Below are positions 1 to 11,416 of a stretch of DNA of 11,416 nt, piece by piece. The translations under genes and the position numbers were made by a program. Location of the stretch: IMG/VR virus record IMGVR_UViG_3300022188_000577, positions 1 to 11,416 of that record; one strand, given 5' to 3'. Within the stretch, counting starts at the first letter, position 1. Every line of letters begins with the position of its first letter. The notes under the pieces were generated by a model. That model saw only the letters and a program-made list of their open reading frames with translations. It had not been told where the DNA came from and ran no database searches.

Positions 1-66
1 AGCTTGAAGGTTTAACCGTTATCTGAATGTATGTAGAATCCACATCCAAATCCGTTAGAATTCCTT
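1..66 (+). repeat. Terminal direct repeat, copy 1 (circular assembly overlap)
   Basis: agcttgaagg...ttagaattcctt is identical to 11351-11416. Confidence 0.98.
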
Positions 67-1132
67 TATACTCTAATTCCGAACCATACCAAACCTCAAT
101 TACAAATGGATTAAAGTATTCCCAATCGTCTTCATAGAACTTATGCCATGTCCCATCATCATACGGATTTGTGAGCTTTGCGTATAATATCTCGACTTCT
201 TCTGTTAGTCCGTTTTCATCCGTTTGGGCTTCTGCTATTAAGTTGTTGTTTCTATCATATACTTTAACAACTCTGCCATATAATGGATTACCGTTTATAT
301 CTGTAACCTTGAATACTACTGTATAAACTCTTTGGATTTCTCCGCTTATATCTCCTTCAGCCAAATACCACCCGATTTTCCAGTTATGCGGTTTACAGTT
401 TACATATTTAGCCACATTCGGAGAGCGCAACCTGTAAACATTCGCTAACCTATCTTTTGACGAACCTCTTAAATTTCTAAAAACTTGCCCAGCAGAGTTT
501 ACGACCCATGTCATTTGCGCAACAGTCGTCTTAATGTAAACATCCTGAACGTCGCAATTAACCACGTCTTCCATATAACCCCATTTGCCCGTTATTATGT
601 TCTTGTGAAACTCAGTATATCTTAAGTCTCTCACTACATTGTGGAATAAACAACCTTTAACTTCCTTTGCATATCCTCTAAAGTCAAATCTATGTGAATC
701 ATCTCTTAGTATAAAGCTACACGCATAAAACTTAACATCGCTATCTTTCTCAACATTGAAGTATGCGATATATGAGCTTTGATATAGCACAAATGTACAT
801 CCTTTTTGATAATTTTCTTCTCCATCTGTAATTACTTTCTCACCAAAAGTAGCGTTACAGTTTGCTTTAAAGTTTATAATGCGTTCACCATTATAGCTTG
901 CTTGAGTTTCAACTACTAAAACCGTTCCCTTCTCTTCGAATAGCGTTTCAGTGCTACCATCGCCGAATTGAAGCTTAGCAGTAGTTTTGTAAACACATTC
1001 GCTAAGTTTCGTGAATTTTCCCCATCCATTATTTACGTCGGCTTGATAAATATCCTCAAAAGTGTAAGGGCTTCCGTTTTTTGACCCTACTACTGTAATT
1101 GTATTGGTTGTAGAATCGTAAGTTATCGGCAT
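1..1132 (-). CDS. 400-aa putative adhesin/terminal fibre protein, N-terminal 377 codons; continues across the junction at 11350->11280
   Basis: Hand translation: ATG at 1132 (2 nt after the upstream stop), no stop down to base 1. Begins MPITYDSTTNTITVVGSKNGSPYTFEDIYQADVNNGWG. Beta-rich middle, then a prealbumin/carboxypeptidase-regulatory-like motif VFKVTDINGNPLYGRVVKVYDRNNNLIAEAQTDENG. Function is inferred. Confidence 0.88.
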   Translation of the reverse strand, partial: MPITYDSTTNTITVVGSKNGSPYTFEDIYQADVNNGWGKFTKLSECVYKTTAKLQFGDGSTETLFEEKGTVLVVETQASYNGERIINFKANCNATFGEKVITDGEENYQKGCTFVLYQSSYIAYFNVEKDSDVKFYACSFILRDDSHRFDFRGYAKEVKGCLFHNVVRDLRYTEFHKNIITGKWGYMEDVVNCDVQDVYIKTTVAQMTWVVNSAGQVFRNLRGSSKDRLANVYRLRSPNVAKYVNCKPHNWKIGWYLAEGDISGEIQRVYTVVFKVTDINGNPLYGRVVKVYDRNNNLIAEAQTDENGLTEEVEILYAKLTNPYDDGTWHKFYEDDWEYFNPFVIEVWYGSELEYKGILTDLDVDSTYIQITVKPSS

Positions 1133-1134
1133 AT

Positions 1135-1410
1135 TTACAATGGATATTCTTCTGGAATTTCTTCACATTGGCTTAGGTCTATCTCTACGTTAATGTCTGA
1201 AACGTCAATCGTATCTTTCTCGTATTCTTTTAGACGTTCAGGAATTTCTAATCCTTGTAGCTTTAACGTTGCTACGTATAGTATCTTAAACTTTTCTGGA
1301 ACTTTGTCCCAATCCATCCTATACCACTTGTCATTGCAAGGAAACACTATCTCTAAGTTTTCTCCGCTTTGGTTCACGTTTATCAAATTGAATGGTATTT
1401 TTACTATCAT
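1135..1410 (-). CDS. Hypothetical protein, 91 aa (fibre operon)
   Basis: ATG start, 1-2 nt gaps to both neighbours, typical composition. Confidence 0.8.
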   Translation of the reverse strand: MIVKIPFNLINVNQSGENLEIVFPCNDKWYRMDWDKVPEKFKILYVATLKLQGLEIPERLKEYEKDTIDVSDINVEIDLSQCEEIPEEYPL

Positions 1411-1411
1411 A

Positions 1412-1762
1412 TTACTTATAAAACTCTGATATCTTAATTAAATTGCCGTTTTCATCATATATCAAATCTCTCTTTAATTGAATAGTTTGATTAGCTTCTT
1501 CATCAAATACATAAAAAACGATTTGCTTTAAAGTAGAATCTTCATAAATAAACTCTACGTCTAATATTTTCACTATAACTTCTTTATATTCGTTTGTAGA
1601 AGTATCTTTATAATATATTACATTTCTATTCTTATATAATGTAAATATTGGGTCTCTTAATATCACTTCATGCTTGTCTACGTAAGCTACTAACTTATTC
1701 CAATCCTTCGCATATAATACCTCTCCCTCTCTTTTTCTTAACTCGTTGTATACCTCTCCCAT
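1412..1762 (-). CDS. Putative virion fibre/adaptor protein, 116 aa
   Basis: N-terminal GEVLYAKDWNKLV resembles the G-x-x-(I/L)-x-A-x-x-WN motif of viral fibre N-termini; C-terminal LIYDENGNL beta-hairpin. Function is inferred. Confidence 0.7.
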   Translation of the reverse strand: MGEVYNELRKREGEVLYAKDWNKLVAYVDKHEVILRDPIFTLYKNRNVIYYKDTSTNEYKEVIVKILDVEFIYEDSTLKQIVFYVFDEEANQTIQLKRDLIYDENGNLIKISEFYK

Positions 1763-1771
1763 TGTTATATA

Positions 1772-2425
1772 TTATATTATTATGATATAGTTATTATCTC
1801 CATACCAATCTATGATTACTTTTTTCGTCATTACGTAACTATTATAGGGTTTTTCAGAATATACGTCAACGATTACGTTTAATATTCTACATAATTCATC
1901 GTAAAACGTATTTTTTGTTATGTTATTATGTATTTCAATACATAAATTTGGCTTGTCTCTCTTTAAAACTTCGTATGCACCTAATAAAACGTTATACTCG
2001 TGTCCTTCCGTATCTATTTTAATAAAATCTACTTTTATGTTATTGAATAAGTTATCAATCGTTTCAGTCTCTACGTCGTAAGTATCTTTTGTTTTAACTT
2101 CTTTATGCTTGTCATCAACTATTGAAGAATGAACTAACGTCTCTTTATCGTAAAACCTCGTTTTTCCTTTTATACTTGATAAAGCTATGTTATAACAAAA
2201 GACTTTCTTATTTAACAATCCCAATTCTTCCATATTTTTAATTAAAATGTTGTATAACTTTTTGTTAGGTTCAAATGCATAAACTTTTTCTGAAATTTGT
2301 GATAAAAAATAAGACCATTGCCCATCTGATGCTCCAATGTCTATTGCCACATTATACTTCTTATCCTTGAAATATTCCTTTATTTTCTTTTCGTGGACAT
2401 TCCATTTAAGTATCTCAATCACCAT
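1772..2425 (-). CDS. FkbM-family SAM-dependent methyltransferase
   Basis: Motifs IDIGASDG, VYAFEPN, NIALS, TIDNL, FIKIDTEGHEYNVLLGA, IEIH. Confidence 0.93.
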   Translation of the reverse strand: MVIEILKWNVHEKKIKEYFKDKKYNVAIDIGASDGQWSYFLSQISEKVYAFEPNKKLYNILIKNMEELGLLNKKVFCYNIALSSIKGKTRFYDKETLVHSSIVDDKHKEVKTKDTYDVETETIDNLFNNIKVDFIKIDTEGHEYNVLLGAYEVLKRDKPNLCIEIHNNITKNTFYDELCRILNVIVDVYSEKPYNSYVMTKKVIIDWYGDNNYIIII

Positions 2426-3123
2426 TTTACCTTATCTAATATATCCTTTTCCGATAACTTTCCTTTAAACTCTATTAGTATAAAGTTATCATACTGTAAA
2501 CAATTATCAATTACTTCAATATATTCCGCATATACTTTTTTTAACATGTCTTTAAATGTTTCCTTTGTTAATTCATTATATGGAAAGTAATCAAATATCT
2601 TTCTAAAAAATACTGAAATCATAAAGGCATTAGTTATCTGCTTCCCCATTGCATACTTGTCAGTTTTATCCCACCAACCCATGTAAGAATTATATACTTC
2701 TTCAACAGGTCTTTTCAACGCTATAACTTTACAATGCTTAAATCTTTCACATATTTCCTTTAAATGTATCCATATGTAAACATCTTTTATTAACCAATTT
2801 CCATCCAATCTATCTATTTCTCTTAATATTCTTAGATAACTCCCTCCTACTTCAATATCTGGATACAAGTTCCAAACCCATTCGTGCATCCATGTTTTTG
2901 CATTTTCATAAATTCGTTCAAGTAATTCTTTTGGTAGCTTATAATAATCGTGGTTAATTTCACCTATTACGTCGTGAGTTAAGCAATTTCCTCTTAACGC
3001 AAACTCTGGATAATCTTTATTGAAAGGTTCATACAATCCATATAAGTTATAATGTTCTTTTAATACTTTATATGTGAATGCTGTTCCCGTTCTCGGAAAA
3101 GAAATTATCATGAACTTAATCAT
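2419..3123 (-). CDS. PAPS-dependent sulfotransferase
   Basis: N-terminal 5'-PSB loop ISFPRTGTAF, then YEPF, and 3'-PB-like motif VIALKRPVEEVYNSY. Overlaps the methyltransferase start by 7 nt. Confidence 0.85.
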   Translation of the reverse strand: MIKFMIISFPRTGTAFTYKVLKEHYNLYGLYEPFNKDYPEFALRGNCLTHDVIGEINHDYYKLPKELLERIYENAKTWMHEWVWNLYPDIEVGGSYLRILREIDRLDGNWLIKDVYIWIHLKEICERFKHCKVIALKRPVEEVYNSYMGWWDKTDKYAMGKQITNAFMISVFFRKIFDYFPYNELTKETFKDMLKKVYAEYIEVIDNCLQYDNFILIEFKGKLSEKDILDKVKW

Positions 3124-3144
3124 GTTAAAAAAATAATTACACTA

Positions 3145-3152
3145 TTTTTAAA
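3145..3152 (-). promoter_or_regulatory. Candidate archaeal TATA box for the sulfotransferase operon
   Basis: TTTAAAAA on the minus strand, 22-29 nt upstream of the ATG at 3123, preceded by purine-rich GGAGAA. Confidence 0.45.
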
Positions 3153-3238
3153 TTCTCCGTCTTTTTAATAATCTTCTTAATAAACTTTTCTTTTCATACA
3201 ATTTCATTATCACATATATTATAAAAAATAATATTAGG

Positions 3239-3532
3239 TTAGCAAGCAAATCTACTACGTTCATTTCTTTGTTCTTCTTCAACTTTTTCTATAAAACTCT
3301 TCACGACGTTCTGGTAAGTATCGAGTATCACTGTAATCGTGTTCAAAGTTGCAAACGCCGATGCATACAGTAATGTTATAGCGTCCATTTCTTGCCCTTT
3401 TTCCTTTAGCTTTTCATTATAAGCTTCTGCTATTTCTTCAAGTAAGCTTACATACTCATCTACTATCTTTTTTAATCTCTTTTTTGATATCTCCTCTGCT
3501 TCTTTGAACCTTCTGTACACTATCATCCTCAT
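3239..3532 (-). CDS. Hypothetical helical/coiled-coil protein, 97 aa
   Basis: ATGA overlap with the upstream gene; charged helical composition. Confidence 0.8.
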   Translation of the reverse strand: MRMIVYRRFKEAEEISKKRLKKIVDEYVSLLEEIAEAYNEKLKEKGQEMDAITLLYASAFATLNTITVILDTYQNVVKSFIEKVEEEQRNERSRFAC

Positions 3533-3801
3533 TTCAATATGAATTCAATTTCTATTCCATCCTTGAACTTAACCCAGATTGTATCGTTCTTTCTTACTTC
3601 ATATGATATACCATCATCCTTTGATTTTGCGTATAATTTGTTATTATGAACGAATAAATCATCTAATTCATCAAGGTTATACTGATCGTCTATCAAAGTT
3701 ATCGATTCTATGTCTTCTTTATTTTTCTTTATATACTCTATAAATTTCCTTATCTTTTCAACTTTTTTTCTATTGAAAAAGTTTGTTATCACGTTTCCCA
3801 T
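3529..3801 (-). CDS. Hypothetical protein, 90 aa
   Basis: ATG preceded by an SD-like GTGA; overlaps both neighbours. Confidence 0.8.
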   Translation of the reverse strand: MGNVITNFFNRKKVEKIRKFIEYIKKNKEDIESITLIDDQYNLDELDDLFVHNNKLYAKSKDDGISYEVRKNDTIWVKFKDGIEIEFILK

Positions 3802-4004
3802 ATTATCACTACAGTTCTATTTCCTTTTTTCTTCGTTTTTATTTCTTCTTTTATTTCTAATTCTTTTACTGCTGAATATACAGCTCCTATCGTTGAATTC
3901 GCTTCTTTCACTATTTCCTTTACCAACTCTGATAATTCTATTTCCTTTATTCCTTTTGCTTTTAACTCATTTATTTTTTTCAAGATGTGTTCTTTCAATG
4001 TCAC
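3789..4004 (-). CDS. Winged helix-turn-helix DNA-binding protein 1 (71 aa from a GTG start)
   Basis: Aligns without gaps to 8883..9089 if it starts at GTG 4004. A TATA/BRE sits 27-34 nt upstream of that GTG, so the track start at 4052 is probably too long. Confidence 0.72.
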   Translation of the reverse strand: MTLKEHILKKINELKAKGIKEIELSELVKEIVKEANSTIGAVYSAVKELEIKEEIKTKKKGNRTVVIIWET

Positions 4005-4030
4005 GTTAATGTTATTTATTATCATCATCA

Positions 4031-4044
4031 TATTTAAATTTTTC
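4031..4044 (-). promoter_or_regulatory. BRE + TATA box for the wHTH1 operon
   Basis: Minus strand reads GAAAAA-TTTAAATA. Confidence 0.6.
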
Positions 4045-4066
4045 TTCATCAACTCGAAAATTAAAC

Positions 4067-4114
4067 AAATTGTTAAACGAATTTTTTGATAAATTGTTTG
4101 ATAAATTATTGAAT
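4067..4114. repeat. Four imperfect tandem 12-bp repeats
   Basis: aaattgttaaac / gaattttttgat / aaattgtttgat / aaattattgaat. Confidence 0.6.
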
Positions 4115-4175
4115 AAATGGTCCATTAGAGTATTTACTTTACAAAAATACTATATTTTATTTAACGACAATTACT

Positions 4176-4183
4176 TTTAATAA
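4176..4183 (+). promoter_or_regulatory. Candidate TATA box for 4209..4421
   Basis: TTTAATAA 26-33 nt upstream of the ATG. Confidence 0.45.
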
Positions 4184-4208
4184 GTTACTTGATACGTTAC
4201 TTATTAAA

Positions 4209-4425: not shown

Positions 4426-4593
4426 TTATTTTATTATCTTAACGATTCTTTCAAACGTTGGTTTGTTCTTTAACATTACTCTAAAGACTTTATTACAATA
4501 AGGACATCTTTTCGTCCAATTGTATTTGTTATTCGATTTTGGTTGATATTTCATTGTTTTATTACAATGTGGGCATTGAACTATTAATATCAT
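4426..4593 (-). CDS. C4 zinc-ribbon protein, 55 aa (absent from the ORF track)
   Basis: Hand translation MILIVQCPHCNKTMKYQPKSNNKYNWTKRCPYCNKVFRVMLKNKPTFERIVKIIK*, with two CPxC motifs. Starts 9 nt after the upstream stop. Confidence 0.85.
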   Translation of the reverse strand: MILIVQCPHCNKTMKYQPKSNNKYNWTKRCPYCNKVFRVMLKNKPTFERIVKIIK

Positions 4594-6850: not shown

Positions 6851-6890
6851 TTGTTGTTTCACTTTTGAGTTATCAAGAACCCATTGTGTT

Positions 6891-6903
6891 CAAAATTTAT
6901 AAA
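6891..6903 (+). promoter_or_regulatory. BRE + TATA box of the divergent zinc-finger operon
   Basis: CAAAA-TTTATAAA; TATA is 23-30 nt upstream of ATG 6926. Confidence 0.65.
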
Positions 6904-6925
6904 TGAAAGGTCATGTTGGTATATT

Positions 6926-7084
6926 ATGTCAAAGGTAACCTTGTGTCCCAGATGTAATAATAATATGAAGAGTATTTATATTAAGAGAGGAGGAAAGTAC
7001 GTTATCATAGGAAAAATTTGTTTAAATTGCAAGTTATACTTCTTTTATGATATTGATACCAAAGGAAAACGTGATAAGACTTGA
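6926..7084 (+). CDS. C4 zinc-ribbon protein, 52 aa
   Basis: MSKVTLCPRC...ICLNC. ATG 6926 fits the TATA spacing; the track start at 6884 lies upstream of the promoter. Confidence 0.78.
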   Translation: MSKVTLCPRCNNNMKSIYIKRGGKYVIIGKICLNCKLYFFYDIDTKGKRDKT

Positions 7085-8882: not shown

Positions 8883-9089
8883 ATGAACGTGAAGCAACTT
8901 GTATTACTACTGCTACAAGATTATAAGGACATGGGGGTTACCAAAATAGAGGAAAGGGTATTGGTAGAGGAAGTTATAAAGAGAACAGGATGTCACAGGC
9001 AGACTGTGTATAACGTAATACATTGGTTAAAAGTTAGAGGTGTAATAAGGGTTGAAGGCTCGGGTAGGAACAAGTTTATCTTACTTTAA
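8883..9089 (+). CDS. Winged helix-turn-helix DNA-binding protein 2, 68 aa
   Basis: LVEEVIKRTGCHRQTVYNVIHWLKVRGVIRVEG is a typical HTH recognition helix followed by L-x-x-x-G-x-I and a wing. Confidence 0.85.
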   Translation: MNVKQLVLLLLQDYKDMGVTKIEERVLVEEVIKRTGCHRQTVYNVIHWLKVRGVIRVEGSGRNKFILL

Positions 9090-9110: not shown

Positions 9111-9863
9111 ATGAAGTATCGTTATAGGGATATAACATATAGACTTAAAAGGTACAAACTGTACTGGAAACAAAGACTTTATTATATTTTAGTTGATTTG
9201 ATAAAAGAACGCGCGTCTGAAAGGTTATTAGATGAATTAACTAAGCAAATGTTTTTTGAGTGGATTGTTATTCCTAAACTAAAATCTTTAGGATTTACAG
9301 ACGAAGAGTTAAGGAGAATGTTTCCTTCATATCTCGGATATGCAAAGAAGTTGTGGAACAAAAAATACAAGTATGTTTTTTCTTCTTTAGACGTTGAACA
9401 CGATAACGTTTATTACGAAATGATTCAAAGAGGATTCGATAAAGAAAAGAGTAAAACAGCGTTAAATATTGGTAGAAAACATCCTGTCGTTGCAAAAGCT
9501 TATATTAAAGTTTCGTCAACTCCTTTAATTTATCCACCCCTTCTAAAAGCACTTCCCGTTTCTACTAAATTTAGTTACGAAATAGTTCCACCAATATTAG
9601 TATCAAAAGAGTTAAAAACTAAATTTAGTTACAAATTAACTCCACCTTTAACTGTTGAAAAAGAAATTAACGTATCTTTTAATTACTCTCTAGTCCCACC
9701 TTTGGAAGTTGAAAAAGAAATTAACGTGTCTTTTAACTATTCGCTTGTTCCACCAATCAAAATATCGAAAGAAGTTAACGTATCTTTTAATTACGAACTA
9801 GTTCCACCCTTAAAAGTTATAAAAGAAATTGAAATTATATTTAACTATGAAATTACAAGCTAA
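9111..9863 (+). CDS. Capsid-fold N-terminal domain fused to six 18-aa repeats (putative terminal/fibre anchor), 250 aa
   Basis: VIPKLKSLGF...PSYLGYAKKLWNKKYKY...MIQRGFD matches the paralog pattern; C-terminal repeats of the type VPPLEVEKEINVSFNYSL. Confidence 0.78.
   Translation: MKYRYRDITYRLKRYKLYWKQRLYYILVDLIKERASERLLDELTKQMFFEWIVIPKLKSLGFTDEELRRMFPSYLGYAKKLWNKKYKYVFSSLDVEHDNVYYEMIQRGFDKEKSKTALNIGRKHPVVAKAYIKVSSTPLIYPPLLKALPVSTKFSYEIVPPILVSKELKTKFSYKLTPPLTVEKEINVSFNYSLVPPLEVEKEINVSFNYSLVPPIKISKEVNVSFNYELVPPLKVIKEIEIIFNYEITS
9531..9854 (+). repeat. Six tandem 54-bp coding repeats
   Basis: YPPLLKALPVSTKFSYEI / VPPILVSKELKTKFSYKL / TPPLTVEKEINVSFNYSL / VPPLEVEKEINVSFNYSL / VPPIKISKEVNVSFNYEL / VPPLKVIKEIEIIFNYEI. 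Confidence 0.95.
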
Positions 9864-11350: not shown

Positions 11351-11416
11351 AGCTTGAAGGTTTAACCGTTATCTGAATGTATGTAGAATCCACATCCAAA
11401 TCCGTTAGAATTCCTT
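11351..11416 (+). repeat. Terminal direct repeat, copy 2 (circular assembly overlap)
   Basis: Identical to 1-66. Confidence 0.98.

Follow-up and report, generated by a model that had tools for sequence, protein, structure and literature searches.

The stretch of DNA analysed here, called the window, is a complete virus record of IMG/VR (IMGVR_UViG_3300022188_000577) of 11,416 nucleotides (nt). It encodes a set of three putative sugar-modifying enzymes: a sulfotransferase-family protein (P0001), a methyltransferase of the FkbM family (P0002), and a glycosyltransferase of the GT4 type (P0003) (Table 1). Positions 1-66 are identical to 11351-11416, the unit genome is 11,350 nt with a G+C content of ~30%, and the DNA is present in at least 10 hydrothermal-vent metagenome runs. 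An earlier note on this DNA, made from the letters alone, had described overlapping sulfotransferase and FkbM genes and a separate GT4 gene that together fill more than 20% of the genome and are its only recognisable enzymes. All of this holds: the three open reading frames (ORFs) lie where they were placed, the overlap is 7 nt, the genes add up to 2520 nt (22.2% of 11,350 nt), and profile scans found no other ORF in the window that reaches any enzyme-family cut-off. The note had also called the first two genes coupled, and here only the overlap itself stands. Adjoining minus-strand genes elsewhere are separated by gaps of 2, 1, and 9 nt or overlap by 4, 13, and 1 nt, and because such short gaps and overlaps (1-13 nt) are usual for the minus strand, the overlap is weak evidence of functional coupling.

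Table 1. Features of the window that bear on the three-enzyme set
Feature	Position	Strand	Basis
Sulfotransferase-family protein P0001, 234 amino acids (aa)	2419..3123	-	ORF; family profile, motifs, model
FkbM-family methyltransferase P0002, dependent on S-adenosylmethionine (SAM), 217 aa	1772..2425	-	PF05050, TIGR01444
Overlap ATGGTGA (FkbM start and sulfotransferase stop), 7 nt	2419..2425	-	Read directly
GT4-type glycosyltransferase P0003, 386 aa	7436..8596	-	PF00534
TATA-like TTTAAAAATA, 20-29 nt upstream of the sulfotransferase ATG	3143..3152	-	Sequence read
Genes for 116-aa, 91-aa, and 400-aa proteins downstream of FkbM, the last crossing the end repeat to 11280	2..1762	-	ORFs
Major capsid protein of the SIRV/SFV1 type, 120 aa	6447..6809	-	Pfam families above cut-off

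The search with hidden Markov models (HMMs) that the earlier note had proposed gave a split result, with FkbM and GT4 above their curated cut-offs and P0001 just under all three sulfotransferase cut-offs. P0002 scores 84.7 bits against Methyltransf_21/FkbM (PF05050; cut-off 22.7) and 108.1 bits against TIGR01444 (cut-off 37.7), and it matches phrog_8156 at 1e-30. It carries the SAM-binding motif DIGASDG at 29, an acidic AFEP at 50, and the family motif IDTEGHE at 137, and its assignment as an FkbM enzyme is borne out. Several relatives of P0002 match PF05575 (V_cholerae_RfbT), a likeness to the FkbM-type RfbT of Vibrio cholerae and its polysaccharide loci, although the identity of P0002 to any named enzyme of this type is low. 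Among GenBank phages and archaeal viruses, the FkbM relatives of P0002 all come from bacteriophages, with none from an archaeal virus. P0003 was also rightly recognised as a GT4 enzyme: it reaches 54 bits against Glycos_transf_1 (PF00534; cut-off 26.4), matches phrog_2170 at 1.6e-19, and has RKG at 200 and the E-x7-E motif as E281-x7-E289. No Glyco_transf_4 match was found in its N-terminal half. Hydrophobic segments are absent from P0001, P0002, and P0003, which suggests that the three enzymes would work in the cytoplasm, where SAM, 3'-phosphoadenosine 5'-phosphosulfate (PAPS), and nucleotide sugars are found.

A methyltransferase in a viral genome could also belong to a system that protects the virus from host defence by modifying its DNA or RNA, with the sulfotransferase as its partner. 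All that speaks for such a role is that nucleic-acid methyltransferases are frequent in viruses. FkbM (PF05050/TIGR01444) is an O-methyltransferase family and not a DNA-methyltransferase family, the P0002 sequence has no (D/N/S)PP(Y/F) motif, every gene context described below is sugar-related, and we know of no PAPS-dependent DNA modification. The earlier note had ranked DNA modification as a less likely alternative; it can now be regarded as extremely improbable.

From its own sequence, P0001 is only a lead to a sulfotransferase because its scores are below threshold: 24.3 bits for Sulfotransfer_3 (cut-off 27), 22.7 for Sulfotransfer_4 (cut-off 22.8), and 16.9 for Sulfotransfer_1 (cut-off 22). 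Single-sequence searches gave no match in the Protein Data Bank (PDB) and nothing in NCBIfam, in GenBank phages and archaeal viruses, or in IMG/VR, and the one weak match in PHROGs is to a family of unknown function. It is the family-level evidence that made the assignment solid. An exhaustive HMMER search collected the P0001 family as 50 representative clusters, 46 of which were aligned (alignment A1). The members are archaeal or archaeal-viral and range from about 230 to 290 aa, and most derive from short, unassigned metagenomic contigs. The A1 profile finds only sulfotransferases in the PDB, with 5tiz first (5.5e-5) and Stf1 (2zq5) second (8.7e-5); tyrosylprotein sulfotransferases (TPSTs) follow weakly (E 0.03-0.05), and the few unrelated chains all have E >0.5. 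In Pfam, Sulfotransfer_3 is matched by 32 of the 46 members, Sulfotransfer_4 by 19, and Sulfotransfer_1 by 7, with a best E of 2e-8, and no member matches a kinase family.

The sulfotransferase superfamily is defined by a PAPS loop with Lys or Arg (Arg together with Ala in Stf0) and by a 3'-phosphate site of the form RXXXDXXXS (PMC11625862). Counterparts of both are found in P0001. After strand 1, the loop of the family has the consensus G-x-P-R-[TS]-[AG]-T-[TS], and across the 46 rows of A1 its columns hold G in 39, P in 43, R in 41, T/S in 42, A/G in 46, and T/S in 46; a Lys at the Walker position occurs in none of them. P0001 has F-P-R-T-G-T-A at 9-15 (P10-R-T-G-T14), placed by the structural model between a strand at 2-7 and a helix at 14-25, and thus a PAPS-binding loop with Arg and Gly and no Walker-A lysine. 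The strand-turn-helix for the 3'-phosphate is represented by R138-P-V-E-E142-V-Y-N-S146, modelled after a strand at 132-137 and in a helix at 140-153; this R-x3-E-x3-S fits RXXXDXXXS. The R138 column is Arg or Lys in 37 of 46 members, and the loop and Arg138 are kept across roughly 25-30% identity in the family. Three residues are invariant in A1 (E32, P33, and K113), and the candidates for a catalytic base are E32 (46/46), H50 (45/46), and D114 (45/46).

The AlphaFold (AF2) model of P0001 is a confident one, with a predicted local distance difference test (pLDDT) score of 95.4 and a predicted template modelling (pTM) score of 0.92. Compared with solved structures, it lies at much the same distance from shikimate kinases (Z 11.7) and sulfotransferases (Z 10.6 and 10.2), and its top Foldseek match is an adenylate kinase. 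These solved-structure comparisons (Foldseek, VIA-align) cannot separate kinase from sulfotransferase because the core is common to both. Among ESM Atlas neighbours, the two best are sulfotransferase clusters, with template modelling (TM) scores of 0.76 and 0.74 over 220 and 207 of the 234 residues, and shikimate kinases reach 0.56 over ~161 residues.

One could argue from these data that P0001 is not a working PAPS sulfotransferase but either a kinase-like P-loop enzyme that uses a different donor or a binding protein without activity. The missed Pfam cut-offs, the lack of a PDB match for the single sequence, and the top-ranking kinases among solved structures all point this way, as does the 3'-phosphate-binding (PB) serine of the S146 column, which is poorly conserved (S in 14/46, A in 14/46). 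On the other side stand the missing Walker lysine and missing kinase-family matches in all 46 members, the whole-length structural match that favours sulfotransferases, and the retention of the loop and Arg138 at such low identity. The gene also appears to be kept intact in nature. Contigs of three vent runs cover 1683-3474, 1387-3195, and 1683-3066 with zero differences, spanning the sulfotransferase-FkbM junction and its flanks, and the lone variant in the sulfotransferase gene, from a fourth run (2782 A>G), is synonymous and falls in the codon of the near-invariant D114. A nonfunctional or kinase-like P0001 is thus very unlikely, and profiles, motifs, and model together make for a solid prediction that it belongs, as a divergent member, to the sulfotransferase superfamily. 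The earlier note had weighed its call of a sulfotransferase against a kinase without PAPS sites; the call stands and the PAPS sites are present.

Comparison with characterised enzymes places the family near two groups. Like Stf0 and Stf1 of Mycobacterium tuberculosis (Sulfotransfer_3-like), it has a loop Arg, with Ala in most family members as in Stf0 and Gly13 in P0001 itself (PMC11625862). As in glutamate-type sulfotransferases, the acidic residue after strand 2 (E32 in P0001) could be the base. Unlike Stf0 and Stf1, the P0001 family is archaeal or archaeal-viral, and the identity is too low for a single-sequence match. The second group is the oxamniquine-activating sulfotransferases of schistosomes (Sulfotransfer_4; 5tiz, 4mua), which share a G-L-P-R-T-G-T loop, an Asp aligned with D114, and a T-I-R-D...S 3'-phosphate segment aligned with R138..S146, with a structural Z of 10.2 over 183 residues. 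These are, however, eukaryotic small-molecule enzymes without a glycan context.

Members of the P0001 family repeatedly lie in a glycan context. The genomic place of eleven family representatives besides P0001 was inspected, with no formal background model. Two contigs were too short to judge and one had no sugar genes. The other places show a variety of arrangements around the sulfotransferase (ST) gene: GT4-ST; ST beside a small methyltransferase; an overlapping methyltransferase-ST pair; a glycosyltransferase (GT) string of the form GT-ST-GT-nucleoside diphosphate (NDP)-sugar epimerase-methyltransferase; GT2/GtrA-ST; and GT-methyltransferase-ST-GT. In a Desulfurococcales metagenome-assembled genome (CAZTBM010000017; L003/L008, 6847-10140), genes for a GT4 enzyme, the sulfotransferase, a small class-I methyltransferase, and a PF01663 phosphodiesterase-family protein overlap one another among ordinary cellular genes such as those for Alba and an M24 peptidase. 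This operon is a candidate archaeal locus for glycan sulfation and methylation. The small methyltransferase belongs to one orthologous family at four of these places, with identities of 32-59%. In the window, its role is taken by the FkbM enzyme, which is not homologous to it. The pairing of the sulfotransferase with a methyltransferase and glycosyltransferases appears from these gene orders to be a trait of the family and not of the window genome alone.

An FkbM enzyme also occurs at one of the other places (L034), 30.5% identical to P0002 and found with GT2, GtrA, GT4-like, and GT87 genes within 6 kb of the sulfotransferase. This place (GCA_054042665.1, JBPKUR010000003.1, 17533-30399) is on a 42-kb contig that also encodes a family-B DNA polymerase, an XPD-like helicase, and an AAA_25/Rad51-like ATPase. 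The contig may represent a further virus or mobile element that has this chemistry. The 219-aa neighbour of another protein, P0010, was considered as a further FkbM and is not one.

The window virus, which comes from deep-sea vents, is placed by its capsid protein among the filamentous archaeal viruses with a SIRV2-type capsid (Tokiviricetes / Ligamenvirales). The 120-aa capsid ORF passes the cut-offs of two Pfam families, Sulf_coat_C (29.2 bits against a cut-off of 25.2) and SFV1_VP4 (28.5 bits against 27), and in tblastn it shares 30-32% identity with its counterparts in SBFV2 and SFV1. SFV1 (Lipothrixviridae) is the nearest GenBank relative by capsid protein. Its genome has genes for five glycosyltransferases and for a GDP-mannose 4,6-dehydratase, and three of its virion proteins (VP3, VP4, and VP5) carry glycans (PMC6105669). 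The capsid protein relates the two viruses; in contrast to SFV1, the window genome is three times smaller and has a sulfotransferase and an FkbM enzyme from families that searches of GenBank archaeal viruses did not turn up. The earlier description of the virus as ligamenviral is upheld for the capsid protein family and fails for the genome ends, which are 66-nt direct repeats and not the inverted terminal repeats that a classical ligamenvirus has on its linear genome. The 400-aa ORF (1132 down to 2, on to 11280) gets its last 23 residues and its stop only across the record junction. Together with the direct repeat, this suggests a circular or permuted genome, which is unusual for viruses with such a capsid; the alternative is that the repeat may be an assembly artefact through a shared variable region. 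A relative, G352, is classed with inverted terminal repeats.

Related viral contigs indicate which of the three genes are stable and which are not. The closest relative of P0002 is P0054 (43% identity), encoded on a 9.6-kb contig, L045 (JGI 3300021472 Ga0190363_1002880). Given 73% identity in the capsid protein, 59% in a capsid paralogue, and 35% over 382 aa in GT4, this contig is by sequence comparison a sister virus of the window virus. Its gene row at 1133-4189 has the order GT4, sugar-1-phosphate nucleotidylyltransferase with a cupin domain of the mannose-6-phosphate-isomerase type, and FkbM, and the nucleotidylyltransferase/cupin protein matches four Pfam families above cut-off. A gene for nucleotide-sugar synthesis is thus encoded by a virus with a ~10-kb genome. 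No sulfotransferase was found on the 9.6-kb contig, and the slot directly upstream of FkbM is held by the sugar-nucleotide enzyme there and by the sulfotransferase in the window. This gene swap between close relatives points to fast diversification of a virion or cell-surface glycan, probably driven by pressure from host recognition or from stability at high temperature.

A more distant relative, L026, has a capsid protein 45% identical to that of the window, inverted terminal repeats, and two GT4 genes; the one beside the capsid gene encodes a protein 27% identical to P0003. It has neither a sulfotransferase nor an FkbM gene, which makes the pair accessory. Within this lineage of three, it looks as though GT4 is conserved, FkbM is common to the two closest members, and the sulfotransferase was gained as an accessory gene.

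The sulfotransferase is also found with capsid genes on further contigs. Two of the places described above, on L023 and L035, are on contigs that encode a relative of the window capsid protein (pairwise E 3e-9, HMM E 8e-34) at a G+C content of 45% and 53%. The L023 capsid-like protein has no Pfam match, and the link is made by pairwise comparison and a home-made HMM. The module thus recurs alongside capsid genes, most likely in related filamentous viruses of different hosts. In a maximum-likelihood tree, which is unrooted and has most rows of unknown source, the sulfotransferases of the three capsid-bearing contigs do not form a single clade and therefore do not indicate a single viral origin. 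We tentatively propose, at somewhat less than even confidence, that an uncharacterised family of PAPS sulfotransferases, habitually found with a methyltransferase and glycosyltransferases, forms an accessory module that recurs in filamentous archaeal viruses of hydrothermal settings and in their hosts and is exchanged horizontally.

In the window itself, the sulfotransferase and FkbM genes head a string of five on one strand (sulfotransferase, FkbM, 116 aa, 91 aa, and 400 aa) with gaps of at most 9 nt. The TATA-like TTTAAAAATA is a possible promoter of this five-gene unit, as read from the DNA letters. The 400-aa protein at the end of the string has a weak Ig-like domain (Big_1/bMG3 matches). 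In four vent runs, the stretch 1-1300 is represented by many short variant contigs with loose ends, and in run X1 the summed depth is ~8000 at 801-1000 against ~25 over the remaining genome. The stretch is either hypervariable or shared with other abundant elements. Since fragmented variant contigs over the 400-aa gene are expected of a host-recognition protein, the 400-aa protein is a candidate fibre or host-recognition protein.

The function favoured here, with a little better than an even chance of being correct, is that the three genes make up a cytoplasmic glycan-tailoring set in which GT4 transfers a sugar, FkbM O-methylates, and P0001 O-sulfates with host PAPS, with a glycan of the virion as the best guess for the acceptor. 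In such a pathway, the GT4 enzyme would transfer a sugar from a nucleotide sugar, and the FkbM enzyme, using SAM, and the sulfotransferase, presumably using PAPS made by the host, would then cap the added sugar with O-methyl and O-sulfate groups, this order of reactions being the presumed one. In P0001, Arg11 and Thr12-Thr14 of the loop are predicted to hold the 5'-phosphosulfate and Arg138 and Ser146 the 3'-phosphate, and Glu32 or the Lys113-Asp114 pair is predicted to act as the base. Surface proteins of the virion would carry the acceptor glycan. They are favoured because the pair heads a same-strand string whose last gene encodes a hypervariable, fibre-like protein and because virion proteins of filamentous relatives are glycosylated. 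The idea that the enzymes are directed at a glycan, already put forward in the earlier note, gains from the neighbourhoods of the sulfotransferase family and from the sister virus, where FkbM lies beside a sugar-nucleotide enzyme and GT4; by comparison of gene contexts, glycan tailoring appears well supported.

Several observations weigh against a virion-directed set of three. The GT4 gene is 4.3 kb away from the sulfotransferase-FkbM pair, and P0003 is ruled out as an orthologue of the cellular GT4 that flanks the sulfotransferase family (21% identity). The absence of the pair from L026 counts here as well, as do the points raised above against P0001 itself. There is no N-X-S/T site in the 120-aa capsid protein. 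Finally, family scans show that the window virus encodes neither ATP sulfurylase nor adenosine 5'-phosphosulfate (APS) kinase, and a supply of PAPS by the host is plausible only. Of the three cellular genomes with a family member, two have the genes for ATP sulfurylase and APS kinase next to each other, and APS kinase is found in 134 of 351 genomes of the same class. Because APS kinase is this common anyway, its co-occurrence with the family does not discriminate and speaks to plausibility only. In the host search, DNA matches of the window against the 351 genomes were short and at chance level only.

The same data would also fit an application of this chemistry to glycans of the host, either lipid-linked N-glycan precursors or the glycans of the S-layer, pili, or receptors, which could mask receptors, block superinfection, or ease release. 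Being soluble, the three enzymes would encounter lipid-linked precursors on the cytoplasmic side, a cellular GT4-ST-methyltransferase operon contains a member of the sulfotransferase family, and the lack of an N-X-S/T site in the capsid protein would fit as well. The authors of the SFV1 work allow for "viral and/or host proteins" (PMC6105669). A host target is nevertheless rather unlikely given that the pair shares a gene string with a fibre-like variable protein and that relatives keep GT4 beside the capsid gene.

Targets other than a protein glycan must also be considered, namely a glycolipid or the head group of a lipid in the envelope, a small metabolite, or, by direct modification, a tyrosine or serine of a protein. 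The P0001 loop resembles that of Stf0, the trehalose sulfotransferase of a glycolipid pathway, the family profile has its weak match to TPSTs, and the GenBank viruses with the most closely related capsid proteins have envelopes (PMC6105669). Set against this, glycosyltransferases, an NDP-sugar epimerase, and nucleotidylyltransferases predominate among the gene neighbours, and the sugar of a glycolipid would still be a glycan target. We regard such targets as quite unlikely.

If a glycan on virion proteins is the acceptor, one possible carrier on the virion surface is a 250-aa protein with capsid-like sequence (9111-9863). Its N terminus matches the capsid HMM (E 4e-5), and five NVS and NYS sites in all lie in 18-aa repeats. 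The repeats make up its C terminus and are encoded by a tandem array at 9570-9856 with a period of 54 nt. With this protein included, three to four capsid-fold paralogues are found in an 11-kb genome: 6447-6809(-), 10878-11273(+), 4603-5043(-), and the N terminus of 9111-9863(+). The 131-aa and 146-aa capsid-like proteins are 35% identical (E 2e-21), and comparison of the 131-aa protein with the capsid protein gives E 1e-5. Rudiviruses have one capsid-fold protein and lipothrixviruses have two.

Sugar tailoring by viruses is already known elsewhere, and chloroviruses encode glycan methyltransferases. Putative sulfotransferases have been mentioned in Megavirinae (PMC11625862). Like these giant viruses, the window virus has its own sugar-modifying enzymes beyond glycosyltransferases; unlike them, with their eukaryotic hosts and genomes of hundreds of kilobases, it is an 11-kb archaeal virus. 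What is new here is a divergent sulfotransferase family that is repeatedly paired with methyltransferases, both in archaea of vents and in their filamentous viruses. No relative of P0001 was detectable in GenBank phage or archaeal-virus records. Pattern scans of IMG/VR gave no other member of the family, with alignment A3 yielding only four weak sulfotransferase-like genes from outside it (13-28 bits). The literature searched contains no mention of a sulfotransferase with Lipothrixviridae, Rudiviridae, Tokiviricetes, or Ligamenvirales and no earlier account of sulfation encoded by an archaeal virus.

Sulfate and methyl groups are both known on archaeal glycans. Archaeal sulfotransferases are still uncharacterised according to a 2024 review (PMC11625862), and the P0001 family offers concrete candidates for archaeal glycan sulfotransferases that are small, soluble, and found in a conserved gene context in cells and viruses. 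Should the module recur as proposed, virions or infected cells would carry sulfated, methylated glycans, and the family would give a handle on the still unidentified archaeal glycan sulfotransferases. On the glycan-tailoring reading, a filamentous virus of 11 kb devotes a fifth of its genome to sugar chemistry.

The remainder of the genome has some smaller features. Two small winged-helix proteins, at 3789-4052(-) and 8883-9089(+), are weakly paralogous to each other (E 7e-4), and 4426-4593(-) and 6884-7084(+) each encode a small zinc-ribbon protein; all four are probable regulators. Run X5 shows a cluster of substitutions over 3196-3374 and a 12-nt deletion at 3266. These changes lie within or just before a 97-aa ORF (3239-3532) directly upstream of the sulfotransferase, and the sulfotransferase-FkbM stretch shows almost no variation in the same runs.

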